Sequence record: MZ475895.1
Length of the DNA stretch: 64,000 nucleotides
Direction: 5' to 3' (one strand)
In this document: positions 8,114 to 62,781 of the stretch, one piece after another
Layout: every line of letters begins with the position of its first letter
How positions within the stretch are numbered: position 1 is the first letter of the stretch
The notes under the pieces: model-generated
Database searches by the model: none
Seen by the model: only the letters and a program-made list of their open reading frames with translations
Told to the model about the DNA's origin: nothing
Made by a program: the position numbers and the translations under genes

Positions 8114-8752
8114 TTAGTTGGAAGGTGAGGCGAGTTCGGACTCACGTACTTTACGCCATTGAAGCGTGTTGTCTTCAAGCACCATAATCTGGTTAACTTG
8201 AGGTACGTTCTGGTCCTTAATCGGAACAAACTCTTCGCCGTAGCTACCGTTGATACTGATCATGGTGGCAGGCTTCTCGGGGTGCGTGTGATCTTTCGGG
8301 TCACGGTTATTCGTCAGTGTTTCATCACCTTCGAGGATAACACGAGATTCAGCTTCTGGATAAGACAGATAGCCGACACCACGAGTAAGAGAAGTGGCCA
8401 GAGGAGGCAGCGACTGATTAATGACTTTGAGATCATCTGGGTCATATTGCTGGTCAGTCATCGCATCTTCATAGAAGTACAGCTGGGTCCATACGTCTTT
8501 GTACGGATCGATTGGGTCTTTCACTGTACGCTTGAAAGCAGTACGGAAAGTGGAAGACTCTGGGTCCAAGTCAATCCAGATACCATTGACAGGCAGGACC
8601 ACATAACGCGGAATCGCATACGAGCAGTAGAACAACAGACCTAACTGCGAACCGTCTTTGGGCAGACGAAACATGATTGGGTTTTTGTTCTGCTGGTGGA
8701 TATTCGTAAGCAACTCAACGTTACTGATGAACTGTTCAAGTTTCAGTTCCAT
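8114..8752 (-). CDS. Fibre N-module paralog
   Basis: 212 aa; NPIMFRLP, IWIDLDPES, NNRDPKDHTHPEKP match NPITFLFRP, IWIDANSGS, DPRYPTNHDHPDYP of the 1337-aa protein. Confidence 0.65.
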   Translation of the reverse strand: MELKLEQFISNVELLTNIHQQNKNPIMFRLPKDGSQLGLLFYCSYAIPRYVVLPVNGIWIDLDPESSTFRTAFKRTVKDPIDPYKDVWTQLYFYEDAMTDQQYDPDDLKVINQSLPPLATSLTRGVGYLSYPEAESRVILEGDETLTNNRDPKDHTHPEKPATMISINGSYGEEFVPIKDQNVPQVNQIMVLEDNTLQWRKVRESELASPSN

Positions 8753-9520: not shown

Positions 9521-11197
9521 TTACAGACTCAGACTGGTGGAGGTGCTGCCTGATGGGTTGATGTTGAAACGATAGATCAAACGCTTAGTGGTACGCGTCG
9601 GGTCAAGAACAATATCCAGAATCAGGTCGCCGTTAGCGATTGTCTGATTGGTGTTGTTCGTTTCGTCACACACAACTTGATAGCCACGAGAACCAGAGCT
9701 ACCACCACGCAAGCCACGAGCCAGTTTGATCTCTTCGAGGAACTTCTCGACCATCGCTTTGAGCTGCTCACGCAACACGTTATCGTTGGGATCAAACAGG
9801 CCAGTACGCGCTGAACGAGAACACACTTCAAGCACATAGCCAACCATACGCTGAATCTGAATCTGCTGGAATGCAGAACTCTGATTGTACAGCGTACTTG
9901 CCTCCCACACTGCAAAGCCACCGCCACTAATGTCAGGCAGTTTGCGGATGTAGTTGACCTGCTCACGGGTCAGCGCATCTCGGTCGTCCTGATCATACTT
10001 CTGAGTAAGAGCAAGAATGTTCAGAGGACTTGATGCAGTGATACCCGCAGGTGCGAACCAGCTACCGCGATTGTTATCCGTGTACGCGAACACAGCACAG
10101 ATCTGACCAACACAAGCCACCAGCAAGTAGCGACCAGTGTCTTCGTCAAAGATCTTAATGTCAGGCGTGTACAGGGCCATGTTGGTATCGTTCAGGTTCA
10201 GCGTCTGGCGGCGATAACGAATCGCTTTAGATACCGACTGCTCCGAAGTAGGAATACCACAGATAACAAAGCAGTTGATGTGGGCAGCAGCGGCAGCTTT
10301 CATGCCACGATGCACGATGTAGTCCTGAATAGGGCTAAGCAGCAACGTAACACGAATCTCTTCAGGGTCACCGAAGTAATCCTGATAAGCAGCAGCCAGT
10401 TGGTCGGAGGTAACAGTATCACCGTCAGCACCACCTTTGAAGAAGATGAAGTCTGAGCCGAAGAAACTGATATCCGTAGTGAAGTACGGGTTACGGATGA
10501 AACGATAGTTGGAGCTTTCGTTTTCCATAACTGTATCAAGGCGGTACTGACGATCAAACTCATCGGAGTAATCGTACAGGCTTGCCTGATAGCTGTTTAC
10601 AGGGTTAGACCCGTTGATGTAGTTCTCGTACTCGTCGATGTAGAACAGTTTGCTGTTATACTTCGTACGGTCGTCAAACGCAGACAGGCCTTTAGGCACG
10701 GCAGAACGAATCTGGAGCGCCATGTTGTTGTTCCAGTCACCTGGGTTTTCCAGACAGATGTAGCCGATGATGTTATCATTCAGCGGGTCAGTCGGCAGGA
10801 AGCCCAATTGAGCTGGGTCGTCAACGCCAACAACGTTACCGTCTGCGTCAGTGTATGGAGTTACACGAACAACAGGCTGCAATGCAGTTGGGTCGTCAAC
10901 AGTCAGCACACCAACAGCATACTTGGCGTTCTTAGTGATACGCACATAGGTAAGCTGGTTGGTTTGCTCTGAAACAGGAAGAGCCAGATACAGGCCTAGA
11001 CCGTATTTTGGATCTTTGGAACCGAAAGTGTTTTTCAACACGTCTTTACTGCGAACAGAAACACGCTGGTTAACAGGGCCACGAGAAGCCTGTCCAACGA
11101 TGCCTACTACTGCTGTAGATAAAGACGTTGCACCAACGGAGAGATCCTTGACACCAGTGTAGACACCAGCAGAGGGATGCGTTGAGTTAACGGGCAT
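9521..11197 (-). CDS. Contractile tail sheath protein
   Basis: 558 aa; HPSAGVYTGVKDLS start, GIVGQASRGP, CLENPGDWNN, GSWFAPAG, QRMVGY, VVCDETNNT and LILDIVLDP are sheath-family hallmarks. Confidence 0.9.
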   Translation of the reverse strand: MPVNSTHPSAGVYTGVKDLSVGATSLSTAVVGIVGQASRGPVNQRVSVRSKDVLKNTFGSKDPKYGLGLYLALPVSEQTNQLTYVRITKNAKYAVGVLTVDDPTALQPVVRVTPYTDADGNVVGVDDPAQLGFLPTDPLNDNIIGYICLENPGDWNNNMALQIRSAVPKGLSAFDDRTKYNSKLFYIDEYENYINGSNPVNSYQASLYDYSDEFDRQYRLDTVMENESSNYRFIRNPYFTTDISFFGSDFIFFKGGADGDTVTSDQLAAAYQDYFGDPEEIRVTLLLSPIQDYIVHRGMKAAAAAHINCFVICGIPTSEQSVSKAIRYRRQTLNLNDTNMALYTPDIKIFDEDTGRYLLVACVGQICAVFAYTDNNRGSWFAPAGITASSPLNILALTQKYDQDDRDALTREQVNYIRKLPDISGGGFAVWEASTLYNQSSAFQQIQIQRMVGYVLEVCSRSARTGLFDPNDNVLREQLKAMVEKFLEEIKLARGLRGGSSGSRGYQVVCDETNNTNQTIANGDLILDIVLDPTRTTKRLIYRFNINPSGSTSTSLSL

Positions 11198-11198
11198 G

Positions 11199-11249
11199 AT
11201 TTATCTCCTTTTAAGACTGGTAGAAATTATCGTCAATTAGGAGATAAAT
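11199..11249 (-). promoter_or_regulatory. RBS-sequestering inverted repeat with an internal candidate late promoter (ATAATTTCTAC, 11220-11230)
   Basis: Perfect 11-bp inverted repeat ATTTATCTCCT / AGGAGATAAAT; the 3' arm is the sheath Shine-Dalgarno. Confidence 0.7.
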
Positions 11250-11251
11250 GC

Positions 11252-11277
11252 AAAAAGGGCAGCCGAAGCCACCCTTT
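11252..11277 (-). terminator. Intrinsic terminator after the DHH gene
   Basis: GGGUGGC-UUCG-GCUGCCC-UUUUU. Confidence 0.85.
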
Positions 11278-11280
11278 AGG

Positions 11281-12360
11281 TTAACATGCACAGCTTGCTT
11301 GTTCGTGATCGAATTTGACATTCAGATCAATGGTCGGATAAGCAGCCACAAACTCTTCCAGACTTACGTTAAAGCCTGCGGCATTCGCATGACCATCACC
11401 GCCATGCAGACGCGCTGTATGTTTCGCAGAACCCGACTCAGCACCTGTTTTGAAATAACCACTACGCACTGAAATATACACACGGTCTTTGTTCTCACCG
11501 CCGAGACGCGGCATAATAACTGTGTGGAAGCGATTGTGGTTTTCGTAGACGTAGGCAGCGAGTTGAGAACCGATACCACGACCAGCAGGAACAACAACGT
11601 GAGGTCCGTGACAGATCTCATTAGCTTCTGAGAAGAACGCGTGTTCATTCAAATGCTCTTGGAACTTCTGCTCACGGTTTTCAGCACGTTTCTGGCCCAG
11701 AGTAATGATCTGCTCAATGTCACCGTGAACCAGAACATCGATAGCACGTTCAACAGTGCTTGGCGTGCTCACGTACAACACACCGTGCGGTTCCACCTTC
11801 TTAAACGTTTCCGGTGCGTGACCGTCGTAGAAGAAGAACGCACGTTTGTTCTGGCGCTGCCACGTATCGTAATCAGACACCAACTGAGCCATGCGAATGA
11901 CGTTGTTAGCGCTACGACCAGATAGCGACTGGAAGCGAGAGATATGATGGAAGTAGGCAAGCAGTGCACCACTACCACCAGCAGTGAAAGTAAGCTGTAG
12001 AGGCTGTGCACCAATGCGGCGACACTCTTCGGCATACAGTTCATGCGAACGGCAGTTGTGGTGGTCAAGCACAACAAAGTTGGCTTGATAGCGCTGCGTC
12101 AACACAGCCATCTGGCGTTCGGTCAATGAGAAGTCAACGATGATGATCTCTTTGTACAGAGCGTCAACGTCTTTGTCTGATTGTCGAACTCCTACCATGT
12201 CTTCGATAGCTGTACCATCAGCAAGAGCAATAGGTGCATTGTCTTTTGCGTAATGGGCAGGCAGGTAATGGATGTCGTCAGTCGAACGCGCTAGTGCGGT
12301 GATGGCTGCTGCGAAAGAACCATCCGCACATCCTTGATGATAAATCACAAGTGTAGTCAT
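11281..12360 (-). CDS. DHH/DHHA1-family phosphoesterase (nanoRNase/oligoribonuclease-like)
   Basis: YHxxCADG, IVDFS, VLDHH, SDYDTW and C-terminal GGDGHANAAG motifs. Confidence 0.85.
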   Translation of the reverse strand: MTTLVIYHQGCADGSFAAAITALARSTDDIHYLPAHYAKDNAPIALADGTAIEDMVGVRQSDKDVDALYKEIIIVDFSLTERQMAVLTQRYQANFVVLDHHNCRSHELYAEECRRIGAQPLQLTFTAGGSGALLAYFHHISRFQSLSGRSANNVIRMAQLVSDYDTWQRQNKRAFFFYDGHAPETFKKVEPHGVLYVSTPSTVERAIDVLVHGDIEQIITLGQKRAENREQKFQEHLNEHAFFSEANEICHGPHVVVPAGRGIGSQLAAYVYENHNRFHTVIMPRLGGENKDRVYISVRSGYFKTGAESGSAKHTARLHGGDGHANAAGFNVSLEEFVAAYPTIDLNVKFDHEQASCAC

Positions 12361-13409: not shown

Positions 13410-14042
13410 TTAAAGAGATGAGGTCATTAAATCGAGAAGGTTTGAGACTACATGAGCAGGACCAATTGAGATACCCGCTTGCACGGGCAGATGAACACGA
13501 CGAGTAAACAACTCCATCGGGTCTGGGCCACCGCCAGTCACTACGATACGAGGTATCTTTGGAAACATCTCAAGGATATCACGCAGTCTTTCAATTTTAT
13601 AGCTGGTGCTGTCTATCGTCACGTTCGATATGATCAGCATTGACGGTCGCTTGCTTTTGAGTTGTTCATAGTCGAAGCGATCACCATACAGCGTAACCCA
13701 ACGCGGCTTCAAGGCTGTTGTCTCTGAATCTTCAACAGCCGCATGGAAGATAGATAACGCCGCCATCTTCGCACGGTAGTCTGACGGGAAGCTACTGATA
13801 ACCGTGATGCGTGGGTCAAGGCCAAACGGACTTTCAATCATCTTTGCAAGATGCGTCATCTGCTTGGTCTTTGAAAAAATCTTGCCTTTAAAGTAAGGCG
13901 ACATTGGCTTAAAATCTTGTGAGGCTTCGACCACATCGAATGTCTCACGTTTGCCGAAAAGAAGCTGAGGGTCAACTCCCAGCGTCTGCATCTGCTTTGC
14001 TACTGCGGGTTCAAAGTCAAAAGTTAACACAATACCCTCCAT
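13410..14042 (-). CDS. Degenerate DnaC/IstB-like AAA+ protein (helicase-loader-like, Walker motifs lost)
   Basis: Start MEGIVL at 14042; pattern ITVISS...AKMAALSI / MLIISNV...STSYKIERLRDILE...PRIVVT follows DnaC topology, but without GKT or DD. Confidence 0.45.
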   Translation of the reverse strand: MEGIVLTFDFEPAVAKQMQTLGVDPQLLFGKRETFDVVEASQDFKPMSPYFKGKIFSKTKQMTHLAKMIESPFGLDPRITVISSFPSDYRAKMAALSIFHAAVEDSETTALKPRWVTLYGDRFDYEQLKSKRPSMLIISNVTIDSTSYKIERLRDILEMFPKIPRIVVTGGGPDPMELFTRRVHLPVQAGISIGPAHVVSNLLDLMTSSL

Positions 14043-14055
14043 TGTTCTTATCGGG

Positions 14056-14064
14056 TATTTACAG
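14056..14064 (-). promoter_or_regulatory. CTGTAAATA motif
   Basis: 14 nt upstream of the 14042 start; overlaps the upstream Leu-stop codons. Confidence 0.4.
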
Positions 14065-22535: not shown

Positions 22536-22574
22536 CTAGTCCTATCAGAGTGTGTAACACAATATGATGGCTGT

Positions 22575-22583
22575 TATTTACAG
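22575..22583 (-). promoter_or_regulatory. CTGTAAATA motif upstream of polA
   Basis: 40 nt upstream of 22535, immediately downstream of a terminator. Confidence 0.6.
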
Positions 22584-22596
22584 ATTTAGAAACGAG

Positions 22597-22620
22597 AAAG
22601 GGCAGCCGAAGCCACCCTTT
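22597..22620 (-). terminator. Intrinsic terminator
   Basis: GGGUGGC-UUCG-GCUGCCC-UUUCUC. Confidence 0.8.
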
Positions 22621-22626
22621 GTGTTT

Positions 22627-33075: not shown

Positions 33076-33097
33076 AGTGAAATCCTCTGAGGAAATG

Positions 33098-33125
33098 AAA
33101 AAGGGAACCCTGTTAGGCTCCCTTT
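33098..33125 (-). terminator. Intrinsic terminator
   Basis: GGGAGCC-UAACAG-GGUUCCC-UUUUU. Confidence 0.75.
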
Positions 33126-33133
33126 AGGGTTTG

Positions 33134-36255: not shown

Positions 36256-37544
36256 TACTTGACCGACTGTTTAAGCAGACGCTTCTGTTGAGGACTCAGA
36301 CCCATAACGTCGGAGATTTGATCAATCTTCGCCAGAGTCAGAACGCCTTTAGCAGTGCCGCTAGAACCAGTCAGGCTGATCTTAACGAACTCACGTCCTT
36401 CACGACCTGTGACCAGCTGGTGGATAAGAGTGTTCTTACCGCTACGTCCCGCACGCAATGCGCTGCTTGCCATGCCCAAAATCTCGGTAACAGCTTCGCG
36501 CTTCTCAGAAGGAGACAGGCCAGGAACGAGACGCACATAAAGGCTATCGTTCTGCACACGCACGGAGTCGAAGATTTCTTTCTTGCGACCACGAACGGTA
36601 TGCTGGCGTTGACCCAACTGAGTCATGTTACGCAGGTCATCAGTCGAACGATTGATAGGCTTACGTTCGCTGTAGTTCAGGAATCCATCCAGAGCCATCA
36701 GCTGGTTGATAGCACGCTTCATTTCAGGAGCGGTTTCAATCAGACGGCCCAGTGGGAATGAGTTAGGAACTTTCTCATCCACCAGCGAGGTGATGTAGTT
36801 TTCACTCAGACCAGTAGCCACTGCAATCTTGGTAGAGACTACGATAGCATAGGTCGGATAGTGCAGGCCGTCAGAGTTCACGAAGTTATCGATGAACACA
36901 TAGGTCTGGAAGATGATTGGGTCAGTACCCTGCGCGATGAAAGTACGTGTACGAATCTTAGAGTAATCTTCTTTACTCAGAATCTTCGACAGGTAGTTAG
37001 CGATGGTAGCAGCCAACTTGGTGTGTTCTTTCGGTGCGCCGTTCTTAACGTCAATGCTCATCAAACGCACCAGCTGGGTCTGCTGGTCTTTGGCCTGATT
37101 GATAACACTAAGCAATGACTTGGAAGCGCCTGTCTGATCTTTGAAGGCACTGAACGTTTTGCTATTCAGAATCTGATAAGCAACGGACAACTCGCCGATA
37201 GCCTGAGACAACTGACTGACCTGAGCGTTATATTTAGCTTTGTTCTGGACGTCAGAAATATCAATCTTCGACAAGTCGATCACTTGGTTCAGATCGATTG
37301 ACTTGGCCTGTTTACCTTTGATTGAGCCTTCCAGATCAGAAAGTTCAATCGCTTTAGGGCTGGCGCTAACAGACAGCAGCTTCTTAGGAATGGTTACAGA
37401 GGTAGCAAGAGAGATAACGTTTTCAAGTACCTTCTTGAACTCTTTAGCAGTACGTGCATTACGCAACGCCACCATGTTCCCAGAGCCGTAATCAACGGAT
37501 GCGCTGATGCTGCTAACTTCATTGTTTTTGGCAGTCTTAGCCAT
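36255..37544 (-). CDS. Putative head/core protein with N-terminal SxSA sites
   Basis: Start MAKTAKNN (GAGGA RBS); SSISA and LSVSA motifs. Confidence 0.55.
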   Translation of the reverse strand: MAKTAKNNEVSSISASVDYGSGNMVALRNARTAKEFKKVLENVISLATSVTIPKKLLSVSASPKAIELSDLEGSIKGKQAKSIDLNQVIDLSKIDISDVQNKAKYNAQVSQLSQAIGELSVAYQILNSKTFSAFKDQTGASKSLLSVINQAKDQQTQLVRLMSIDVKNGAPKEHTKLAATIANYLSKILSKEDYSKIRTRTFIAQGTDPIIFQTYVFIDNFVNSDGLHYPTYAIVVSTKIAVATGLSENYITSLVDEKVPNSFPLGRLIETAPEMKRAINQLMALDGFLNYSERKPINRSTDDLRNMTQLGQRQHTVRGRKKEIFDSVRVQNDSLYVRLVPGLSPSEKREAVTEILGMASSALRAGRSGKNTLIHQLVTGREGREFVKISLTGSSGTAKGVLTLAKIDQISDVMGLSPQQKRLLKQSVK

Positions 37545-39578: not shown

Positions 39579-39604
39579 TCTGTTCCATACGTTTTAGTGT
39601 AAGC

Positions 39605-39613
39605 TATTTACAG
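39605..39613 (-). promoter_or_regulatory. CTGTAAATA motif upstream of sbcD
   Basis: 27 nt upstream of 39578, directly after a terminator. Confidence 0.6.
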
Positions 39614-39616
39614 AAT

Positions 39617-39637
39617 AAAGGGCAGCCGAAGCCGCCC
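39617..39637 (-). terminator. Intrinsic terminator
   Basis: GGGCGGC-UUCG-GCUGCCC-UUUAUU. Confidence 0.7.
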
Positions 39638-39674
39638 AATGTTGGTCAGATGATAAAAATTATTGTACAAATAG

Positions 39675-39697
39675 AAAACGCCCCGTTAGGAGCGTTT
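39675..39697 (-). terminator. Intrinsic terminator after 39700..40470
   Basis: AAACGCUCC-UAAC-GGGGCGUUU-UCUAUUU. Confidence 0.65.
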
Positions 39698-39699
39698 GC

Positions 39700-42273: not shown

Positions 42274-42294
42274 AAGATTCTCCTGAGAAATGAG

Positions 42295-42315
42295 AAAGCC
42301 CCAATTAAGGGGCTT
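42295..42315 (-). terminator. Intrinsic terminator
   Basis: AAGCCCC-UUAAUU-GGGGCUU-UCUC. Confidence 0.65.
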
Positions 42316-42319
42316 GTGA

Positions 42320-45066: not shown

Positions 45067-45636
45067 TTATTTAACCCCCACGTGTTTAGCCAGATTGATA
45101 ACGCGAGTAACCCAACCATACACGTTCTCTTCTTGGTCTTCTGACTTCTTCGCCAGATTAAGCAAGAATGCTTTACGCATGGAGTTGAAGCTATCTGTAA
45201 GTACAGAAATGTCACGCACCTTAGCGTACAGGCCTAAGGTCGATAACGTTTTAGGTCCGATGTTTGGTGCAGGCACAAAATCGGGATACAACTTCTGGCG
45301 ATTGTTGAATACGTTCAGCAAGCCTTGAAGCTCCAGCGCAGCAGTACCCGCACCTGAGTTGACTGCATAGTCAAACACATAGATGGCGAGTTCTTCGCTG
45401 TACTTGGCAATGTCATCGCACTTGCACAAGTCCCAATAGTTCTTGGCATAGATCGCTTCTGCGGTTTCACGAGGCAATACTTTCATATCACCCTGATAAC
45501 CATAAGCGCGAGCGACTGGCTGAGTGATACCCCAGCGAGTGGGGCCGCCACGGTCAGCAGCGCGATTTGTGTAACGTTCGCCACCTTCTCTGTCGATAAG
45601 CTCTGAGGTAGCGCGAATAGCTAATTGACTAGGCAT
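45067..45636 (-). CDS. Endolysin, glycoside hydrolase family 108 with a C-terminal PG-binding_3-like domain
   Basis: REGGERYTNRAADRGGPTRWGIT, FDYAVNSG, IGPKTL, GWxxR; start MPSQLA. Confidence 0.85.
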   Translation of the reverse strand: MPSQLAIRATSELIDREGGERYTNRAADRGGPTRWGITQPVARAYGYQGDMKVLPRETAEAIYAKNYWDLCKCDDIAKYSEELAIYVFDYAVNSGAGTAALELQGLLNVFNNRQKLYPDFVPAPNIGPKTLSTLGLYAKVRDISVLTDSFNSMRKAFLLNLAKKSEDQEENVYGWVTRVINLAKHVGVK

Positions 45637-51559: not shown

Positions 51560-51590
51560 CGTAACGTCCATACCGTCTTATGAATGTATG

Positions 51591-51600
51591 GTAAAATTAG
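51591..51600 (-). promoter_or_regulatory. Candidate late-type motif CTAATTTTAC
   Basis: 32 nt upstream of 51559, after a terminator. Confidence 0.5.
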
Positions 51601-51624
51601 TGTTCCTTAAGACATTTCTGAAAT

Positions 51625-51654
51625 AAAAAAGGGCGACCCTTAGGCCACCCTTTT
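51625..51654 (-). terminator. Intrinsic terminator after the clamp loader gene
   Basis: GGGUGGCC-UAAG-GGUCGCCC-UUUUUU. Confidence 0.8.
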
Positions 51655-51669
51655 GTTAGTTATTTACCA

Positions 51670-53392: not shown

Positions 53393-53639
53393 CTCCAATA
53401 AGCTCTTGTTAGAACGTATTGGAGTCCACCCTGTCAGATGACGGTCGTTCAGGGCTTTCTCCCCGCACACTTATATAGCGCCGTGCGGCAGGCTGCGCTC
53501 GCGAGGTCTTATGTTTTCCACGGCAGGTGGTCCAGGAGGTAGCGTCCTCTGAAAAGATACCCGCCGCACAACAGCCTCGCTATCGGCCAATCAGCGATAC
53601 GCGGTGTTACGCTGAATCGACCTAAATGACTCTGGCCGA
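53393..53639 (-). ncRNA. Candidate structured non-coding RNA (multiple helices, predicted pseudoknot); family unknown
   Basis: ORF-free GC-rich gap with at least five complementary pairs; several mismatches become G.U wobbles only on the minus strand. Confidence 0.5.
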
Positions 53640-53748: not shown

Positions 53749-53758
53749 GGAAAATTAG
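53749..53758 (-). promoter_or_regulatory. Candidate late-type motif CTAATTTTCC
   Basis: Heads the non-coding gap; an AAGGAG element follows about 25 nt downstream. Confidence 0.35.
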
Positions 53759-60670: not shown

Positions 60671-61777
60671 CTAGAGAATTTTAAAGCCCTTGAAAATGTT
60701 ATACGCGTATTCTTTGCGCTGCACGGCACGGGTGGTGCACACCCATTCCCATTGATCGTTCTTTGCTGTGCGCTTCTTCGGCGCTTCCATCACTTTCAGC
60801 ACATAGTTTTTGAAAGGCAGAACCAGCAGATCTTCAGGCTCAAGCGGACCGCAACGCGCAGGCAGAACAACTGTCAGGTTACCTACAGTCAGTTCCTGAT
60901 CGTAATCCAGCACGTTTGCTTCTTCGCTGATATTGCCTTTGACGTAAGGCACGCCCAGATCGAATATCATTGTGGCATGTGTGAAAGCCTCAACGCCACC
61001 GATTCTGATCGTTACGTTCTTGCCACGAAACTTATCCAGCGTTTCCGCTTTCAACTCGACCGCTACGCCGTTCAGCATCAGCATAGGACGTGGGAAAGCA
61101 GGAAGCACTTTCTCATTCAATCTGACCGAATAAGTCGCCTGCGTAAAGTATTTTGGAATAAGCTGATCGAACTCAACGAAGCCGTCTTTGCGTACCTGAC
61201 GGAACGTTGAAGGGCTGGTGGACTGATCGTATGTGTAGCCTTCAATGCGTAGCGCATGGTGCTGCATCATAACGTTGTACACGAAGCCTGTGCTAATGAA
61301 TCCAGGCACAATGCCTTGACGAAAGCACACAGCACAGTTGGCGTTGTTACCGCCATCCCATTTGACGCTCATCTCTTCTTCGGTGTCGCCCATGAGGTCT
61401 GCTGCGCTCAGCGTTGCGTTTTCGCCTTCGTCGAGGTCATCAAGGCTAACCGTTTGACGTCCACCACCAAACATGCCTTTCGACACAGTGTTCAGCTTGA
61501 CGTTGCCCTGAGTGCCGAGGCTTGAACGGCCAACGCTTTTCATTCCACCCAAGTTGGAATCAAAGTCGTCGTTGACTGTTTTGTTGCAACTGCACGTCAG
61601 ACCGAATTTTGCTTTCTTGAATATGATAATGTCCGTAGCGTCAACAGCTAATGCCTGTTCTACCTTGGACTTGACCACTTCCTGAATGGAGTCGAGGCGC
61701 TGCTGCACTCGCTTTGTCTCGTAGGTCTTGTGGCGATCATATTTATTACGGGGTTTGCCACGTTCAATCCAGCTCAT
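60671..61777 (-). CDS. Putative head-completion / neck protein
   Basis: CSC...CAVCFRQG Cys motif and beta-rich C-terminus, as in head-tail joining proteins of large phages. Confidence 0.45.
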   Translation of the reverse strand: MSWIERGKPRNKYDRHKTYETKRVQQRLDSIQEVVKSKVEQALAVDATDIIIFKKAKFGLTCSCNKTVNDDFDSNLGGMKSVGRSSLGTQGNVKLNTVSKGMFGGGRQTVSLDDLDEGENATLSAADLMGDTEEEMSVKWDGGNNANCAVCFRQGIVPGFISTGFVYNVMMQHHALRIEGYTYDQSTSPSTFRQVRKDGFVEFDQLIPKYFTQATYSVRLNEKVLPAFPRPMLMLNGVAVELKAETLDKFRGKNVTIRIGGVEAFTHATMIFDLGVPYVKGNISEEANVLDYDQELTVGNLTVVLPARCGPLEPEDLLVLPFKNYVLKVMEAPKKRTAKNDQWEWVCTTRAVQRKEYAYNIFKGFKIL

Positions 61778-62772: not shown

Positions 62773-62781
62773 CTGTAAATG
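62773..62781 (+). promoter_or_regulatory. CTGTAAATG motif on the plus strand
   Basis: 33 nt upstream of 62814; orientation flips with gene direction. Confidence 0.5.

Follow-up and report, generated by a model that had tools for sequence, protein, structure and literature searches.

The tail sheath gene of Erwinia phage pEa_SNUABM_14 appears to be controlled by a translational lock of the type described for genes e and soc of phage T4, where the choice of the transcription start site opens the Shine-Dalgarno sequence (SD). We give this reading a probability of about 0.7. It supposes that transcripts of the neighbouring replication genes start at CTGTAAATA-type promoters (22583, 19157 and 14064) and mostly end at a terminator located at 11277-11254. 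The fraction that reads through would carry a 5′ arm (11249-11239) that pairs with the sheath SD and spacer (11209-11199) or, alternatively, with the AUG; because of this pairing, ribosomes would be unable to start on read-through sheath RNA. The sheath gene's own [AC]TAATTT promoter, placed in the loop of the hairpin and probably read by the host RNA polymerase with the phage sigma factor, would produce transcripts that begin some 5-7 nt past the motif, near A11218. Lacking the 5′ arm and endowed with an unusually unstructured leader, these would be translated. The late-class promoter, the transcription start site, the read-through and the translational repression are what we infer from sequence features.

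Genomic setting

The window, meaning the whole stretch of 64 kb that was analysed, belongs to the 264-kb genome of pEa_SNUABM_14 (MZ475895.1), which is placed in the genus Snuvirus, among the jumbo myoviruses of the Lu11/PaBG group. Members of this group code for a sigma-70-like factor of their own (PMC7412058). The family assignment of this factor is an HHpred result of the paper on PaBG (PMC7412058), and a Pfam search with the annotated phage sigma factor returned no domain.

The sheath gene, of the gp18 type, occupies positions 9521-11197 on the minus strand and codes for 558 amino acids (Pfam PF17482 and PF04984); compared with T4-like sheath genes, its reading frame is 25% identical (tblastn, E ~1e-16). 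Upstream of it, on the same strand, lies a DHH phosphoesterase-like gene (11281-12360, stop codon at 11283-11281), identified by its match to PHROG 4771 (E 1.5e-58) and by the RefSeq annotation of pEa_SNUABM_7, a phage 99% identical to pEa_SNUABM_14. This gene closes a block of replication genes that runs toward the sheath gene and has CTGTAAATA sites at 22583, 19157 and 14064. The first terminator that transcription of this block would meet is the one at 11277-11254, a scan of the window having found none earlier. PaBG and Lu11 share the gene order, which runs from a helicase through the phrog_20094 exonuclease and one to three small genes to the terminator and the sheath. The intergenic region 11198-11280 is most likely where two same-strand transcription units meet that are active at different times, as judged, for both motif classes described below, from gene content only. 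No lock is present at another junction in the window between replication genes and a gene of the sheath's promoter class, which leads from the clamp loader to 51571.

A hairpin over the ribosome-binding site of the sheath gene

Read in the sense of the mRNA, the 83 nt of the intergenic region present in succession the upstream stop codon, the terminator, GC, the 5′ arm, a 29-nt loop, the 3′ arm, a C and the ATG (11197). A first-pass annotation of this DNA had reported a perfect 11-bp inverted repeat with the sheath SD in its 3′ arm, a promoter motif between the arms and a terminator just upstream. All of these features were found again: a repeat search gives arms of 11 nt at 11199-11209 and 11239-11249, 100% complementary and 29 nt apart, with CGATAATTTC in the loop and the terminator at 11277-11254. 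The 5′ arm, ATTTATCTCCT in DNA and AUUUAUCUCCU in RNA (11239-11249, minus strand), is recognized both by the inverted repeat and by folding as the candidate anti-SD strand. The 3′ arm, AGGAGATAAAT in DNA and AGGAGAUAAAU in RNA (11199-11209, minus strand), contains the SD, AGGAG (11209-11205), and stops 1 nt short of the AUG. An alternative MFE register also pairs AUGC (11197-11194) with GCAU (11251-11248). Besides CGATAATTTC, the loop holds the sequence CAGTC. Given this layout, the 5′ arm is carried only by RNA begun upstream, that is, by RNA that has read through the terminator.

No other inverted repeat was found between 11100 and 11400, and this one is the sole perfect 11-bp inverted repeat with a loop of 3-60 nt in the entire window. 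Its length by itself is not significant, because about 1.0 such repeat is expected per shuffled window. Folded in isolation, the hairpin reaches −14.0 kcal/mol (z = −4.0), and none of 200 shuffles folds as well. The significance of the hairpin rests on its location over an SD, on its effect as compared with leader shuffles and on its recurrence in relatives. As a separate observation, two GTTAAC palindromes, at 11280-11285 (spanning the upstream stop codon) and at 11186-11191 (sheath codons 3-4), are partners in the MFE fold, where they close the entire intergenic region; their pairing is absent from the folds predicted for relatives and probably due to chance.

The terminator that precedes the lock (11254-11277, minus strand) was identified in a terminator scan as a stem of 10-11 bp with a UUCG loop and a T-run. 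Two of its 11 pairs have undergone compensatory double changes in an alignment of seven lineages, so that a GC-rich stem-loop, a U-run and compensatory change together mark it as Rho-independent. An Rfam search of the lock region gave no family at the gathering score, the best match, a CrcZ fragment on the terminator, scoring 15.7 bits where the gathering score is 95. Since an efficient-looking terminator already stands before it, the lock may be of marginal importance only. A near-identical terminator stem, GGGTGGC-TTCG-GCTGCCC, is common to many terminators of the window (intergenic regions 416-477, 22536-22626, 33076-33133, 42274-42319, 11198-11280 and 51572-51669), with a recurrent (C/G)NTTTCT-like tail after the T-run; it looks like a cassette whose occurrences across the genome go back to duplication or to convergent fixation.

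Two classes of promoter-like motifs

The motif in the loop, CGATAATTTC (11223-11232, minus strand, core TAATTT at 11229-11224), was singled out by its conservation and orientation. TAATTT is invariant at the sheath leader in an alignment of 17 relatives. In the window, the consensus [AC]TAATTT, which we name class 1, is matched 12 times, always on the coding strand (12/12, none on the other), for an expectation of 2-9 matches per strand, depending on the background model. Ten of these 12 matches stand 24-88 nt upstream of the start of an open reading frame, and the genes behind them include the sheath, an endolysin (45067-45636), a tail-like protein (8114-8752) and several genes of unknown function. 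Along the genome's plus-strand arm, motif and genes change strand together. In Y3, a phage of a different genus, each of the ten matches in a stretch of 50 kb falls on the coding strand, eight of them in front of homologous genes; the 16 matches of PaBG are oriented like the genes, many of them standing before an SD and an ATG; in Lu11 the variant TAATTTA(A) is likewise gene-oriented. This behaviour supports the view that [AC]TAATTT is a gene-oriented, conserved, single-block promoter, and at the class-1 sites examined there was no −35-like block. With no more than 29 nt between motif and ATG in the tightest case, a −10-like element is the only role open to the motif, and because such an element must precede its own start, any start from the motif in the loop falls 3′ of 11239. 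We regard [AC]TAATTT as probably the late class of promoters, and as probably dependent on the phage sigma factor.

The putative transcription start region at the sheath gene is CAGTC (11215-11219, minus strand, with its A at 11218). It sits 5 nt past TAATTT and is invariant in all close relatives at this promoter; AGTC is found again in JA11. Most other class-1 sites have a pyrimidine-purine step 4-7 nt past TAATTT. CAGTC may be an initial transcribed sequence or a 5′-terminal stem. It can also pair with GAGAC/GAGAU of the SD region, making a mini-stem of 3-5 bp.

Two further places with class-1 motifs deserve mention for themselves. One, ACTAATTTTCC, is found at position 53758 of the window (minus strand), about 120 nt upstream of the region 53393-53639. 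In the leader of the SbcD-like gene (39579-39699, minus strand), a class-1 motif (39663), a terminator-like hairpin (GGGCGGC-TTCG-GCTGCCC followed by a T-run) and a class-2 motif (39613) follow each other in tandem; Y3 has the class-2 site only in this leader. The tandem could give rise to a small RNA some 45 nt long, or it could be an attenuated or decoy promoter.

The class-2 motif, (A/T)(A/T)CTGTAAATA, was found by a motif scan on the minus strand at 22583, 19157, 14064, 52992, 49832, 39613, 32247, 59702 and 58020 and on the plus strand at position 62773 of the window, as well as in record L049 at 24175 and 25256. CTGTAAATA lies 35-50 nt upstream of the genes for DNA polymerase, the clamp, an exonuclease, the clamp loader, an HNH endonuclease, SbcD, SSB and the phage sigma factor. 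The site nearest upstream of the sheath, CTGTAAAT (14057-14064, minus strand), precedes an exonuclease-like gene annotated as 'DNA polymerase' (13410-14030), and further sites on the same strand stand before the clamp (19157) and DNA polymerase (22583) genes. The site at 14064 is the likely source of the transcripts that would reach the terminator at 11277-11254. The class-2 motif is present in Y3 and Lu11 too; in Lu11, ACTGTAAATAAC is found 35 nt upstream of the homologous exonuclease gene. We read CTGTAAATA as a pre-late class. The late promoter of T4 is TATAAATA; the class-2 core, TGTAAATA, agrees with it at 7 of 8 positions, yet it fronts genes that we read as pre-late. Our survey of the literature on the Lu11/PaBG clade found no promoter or transcript map, and a search of public sequencing runs found the phage in DNA or metagenome data only.

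Cost of opening the Shine-Dalgarno sequence

What the hairpin would do to translation was measured as the predicted cost of opening the SD (AGGAGA) in read-through RNA and in promoter-started RNA. For the sheath gene of the window, dG_open is predicted to be 13.2 kcal/mol in read-through RNA vs 2.9 kcal/mol when RNA is started at CAGTC. Replacing or shuffling the 5′ leader is predicted to abolish the occlusion: 300 leader shuffles give 4.1 ± 1.3 kcal/mol on average, with a maximum of 10.9, and none reaches 13.2; ten natural post-terminator tails of the window, swapped in, average 4.4 kcal/mol and do not exceed 7.0, and again none (0/10) reaches the observed value. The leader of an RNA begun at 11218 folds at −5.2 kcal/mol with z = +0.98, and is therefore less structured than its own shuffles. 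The shuffles preserve mononucleotide composition only; natural-tail swaps and analytical expectations were used beside them.

The occlusion singles out the sheath. It is the only locked gene among the eight class-1 genes of the window, and opening of the SD at 61777, 45636 (the endolysin), 38383, 33934 and 8752 is indistinguishable from that in shuffled leaders. In Lu11 the sheath ranks first of 13 genes for the difference in dG_open between long and short RNA; in PaBG it ranks second of nine, the gene above it being another locked gene near 204.4 kb. In that second PaBG gene (KF147891.1, ~204313-204499), an 8-bp anti-SD, CCUCGAUG, upstream of GGATAATTTAC, pairs with CAUCGAGG at the SD, with a dG_open of 11.6 in the long vs 2.4 in the short RNA.

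The first-pass annotation had proposed a T4-style lock and 'weaker versions' of it at 37544 and 51571. For the sheath, the proposal is supported, as far as sequence analysis goes, by the behaviour of the motif, by the class-2 replication block upstream, by the predicted 13.2 vs 2.9 kcal/mol and by recurrence in relatives; as a general feature of class 1 it has to be abandoned. The complementarities at 37544 and 51571 are short, and shuffles reach the observed occlusion in fractions of 0.17 and 0.63, respectively. As neither is above chance, the lock is not general to the promoter class and is specific to the sheath.

Recurrence in relatives

Members of Snuvirus do not differ in the intergenic region, which makes comparison inside the genus uninformative. 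Among more distant relatives the sequence of the 5′ arm of the sheath leader varies and occlusion of the SD is retained. Because helix registers differ between lineages, column-wise covariation is inapplicable to the lock, and opening energies with their null models were used in its place. In what follows, dG_open (kcal/mol) is quoted for the long and then for the short RNA, followed by the fraction of shuffles that reach the observed value.

The haplotypes of Alexandravirus, where TTGTC(G)CTTATA pairs with TATAAGGAGACAA, give 5.7-9.7 and 2.6-4.2 (0.007-0.13). In the AD1 type the arm is UCUCCUUGU, carried within a 30-nt insertion, with values of 11.0 and 2.6 (0.007); in Yoloswag the pairing is GGGCUCUU, with 8.0 and 3.9 (0.023). 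JA11 and JA29 (Salmondvirus) have a 5′ arm that overlaps the promoter, with 8.2 and 3.1 (0.01 in a spacer shuffle). In PaBG, whose sheath is 37% identical, a 13-bp helix around GCTAATTTAC accounts for 12.05 and 5.0 (0/150 shuffles), and in Lu11 CCCCUU(U)AUG abutting GTAATTTAAAT accounts for 12.6 and 5.8 (0/200). The opening-energy test found no lock in the sheath leaders of Y3 and fHe-Yen9-02, and a weak, insignificant one in the SNUABM_5 type, which implies that the lock is dispensable.

Fisher combination of the shuffle tests over nine lineages gives p ~5e-7, to be taken as an indication and not as an exact probability, since the lineages share ancestry. Alcaligenes phage Afa-NA1 was excluded from the statistics, as the start of its sheath gene is ambiguous and the motif was not found upstream. 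Afa-NA1 (PV550095.1) and Salmonella phage Sen-NF (PV359490.1) are records of 78 kb and 108 kb, in which the N-terminal half of the sheath is 57% identical to that of pEa_SNUABM_14 and comes directly behind that of a large helicase gene; both have the look of incomplete or rearranged genomes from the jumbo-phage clade, filed under unexpected hosts.

Alternative explanations

The hairpin comes directly after a terminator and can form only on RNA that arrives from upstream, as would be expected if it were an RNA element in the service of the upstream operon, either a 3′ stem that protects from exonucleases or an entry site for a nuclease that separates the two units. We consider this unlikely. 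Across the lineages that have a lock, pairing with the SD is constant, and the position of the arm, the loop (23 to ~100 nt) and the sequence are free to vary; a protective 3′ stem needs no SD as a partner, and a stem of 11 bp is short for RNase III.

It might also be that a pyrimidine-rich stretch behind the terminator matches the purine-rich SD by chance and has no selected function. About one perfect 11-bp inverted repeat is to be found in 64 kb of shuffled sequence, post-terminator tails of the window are rich in T and C with a common CATTTCT-like motif, and Y3, fHe-Yen9-02 and the SNUABM_5 type have no significant pairing. Against this, no leader shuffle (0/300) and no tail swap (0/10) reaches the observed occlusion; unrelated arms occlude the same gene in PaBG (0/150), Lu11 (0/200), AD1, Yoloswag and JA11; and in three genomes the sheath stands out from the other class-1 genes. 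These nulls and this recurrence make chance quite improbable.

Another possibility accepts the lock and places the start under a host sigma-70 promoter, TTTGCA-17-GATAAT, for which a scan counts 9 of 12 consensus matches; the logic would then not be temporal. There is little to recommend it: the 30-nt insertion of AD1 moves the −35-like hexamer out of place and L013, PaBG and Lu11 lack it, with TAATTT kept in all of them, and the other class-1 sites have no −35 block. Either way the start would fall between the arms, which leaves the logic of the lock unaffected. One may speculate, at long odds, that the read-through RNA is a silent store of sheath message, unlocked late and in trans by cleavage of the loop, by a phage helicase or by an RNA-binding protein. 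If the lock were such a conditional switch and not a passive failsafe, sheath synthesis would integrate two inputs, and the junction would be a gate kept by continual turnover of its arms since before the split between Lu11/PaBG and the Erwinia/Dickeya jumbo phages.

Finally, a DNA-level element, with the arms as half-sites of a dimeric regulator that brackets the promoter or as a cruciform, would suit the roughly symmetrical flanking of the motif, and it is nevertheless highly improbable, because a protein operator would retain sequence and spacing whereas the arm sequences differ between genera with SD complementarity kept, the 5′ arm of AD1 lies in a 30-nt insertion, that of JA11 overlaps the promoter and the arms of PaBG are ~115 nt apart. 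Pairing with the sheath SD is the sole constant across lineages, and this is why the readings as a DNA operator and as an RNA 3′ end both fit poorly.

Relation to known systems and significance

In gene e of T4, a 5′ strand present in long early and middle transcripts pairs with the SD and AUG and blocks initiation, and late promoters beside the ribosome-binding site give transcripts without that strand, which are translated; related phages have similar leaders, and in some of them the structure is missing (PMC3014915). Likewise, in T4 soc, gene 49 and I-TevI, the SD, the AUG or both are sequestered in RNA started upstream and freed in RNA from a close late promoter (PMC3014915). The sheath gene of pEa_SNUABM_14 would resemble gene e in having an SD helix on the long RNA and a promoter that yields RNA without the 5′ strand, both predicted here. 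The differences are many. Gene e codes for lysozyme, whereas here it is the tail sheath that is concerned, and the endolysin of the phage has a class-1 motif but no lock. The promoter of gene e is TATAAATA; that of the sheath would be [AC]TAATTT, in a clade, Lu11/PaBG, which has its own sigma-70-like factor. The lock of pEa_SNUABM_14, unlike that of gene e, is preceded by an intrinsic terminator, and its promoter lies in the loop, as in most lineages, rather than in the 5′ strand as in T4; JA11 comes nearer to T4 in this respect. T4 soc, 49 and I-TevI code for a decoration protein, a resolvase and a homing endonuclease and are embedded in early regions, unlike the sheath, a major structural gene at a conserved junction from replication to tail genes where the arms were replaced between genera. 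Since the loop carries [AC]TAATTT, and the octamer that resembles the T4 late promoter, TGTAAATA, belongs to class 2, the logic would be that of T4 and the element a different one: in terms of sequence, the sheath lock is analogous, not homologous, to those of e, soc, 49 and I-TevI.

Riboswitch platforms and RNA thermometers also pair an anti-SD strand with the ribosome-binding site. The sheath lock differs in having neither a ligand or temperature domain nor a conserved aptamer (no Rfam match), and it would switch by the choice of the transcription start, where riboswitches and thermometers refold one and the same RNA.

For those who annotate or engineer these phages, the prediction is that upstream promoters should yield no sheath protein as long as the 5′ arm is in place. 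The two candidate promoter classes offer targets for the mapping of 5′ ends and for finding out which genes the divergent sigma factor of the clade controls. More generally, the lock would extend a classic T4 mechanism to an unrelated clade of jumbo phages and to a major structural gene. The arrangement of the junction appears to have been kept across genera whose sheaths are at most 37% identical, with the pairing sequences replaced several times, and it would thus be a natural example of selection acting on the structure of an RNA over its sequence.
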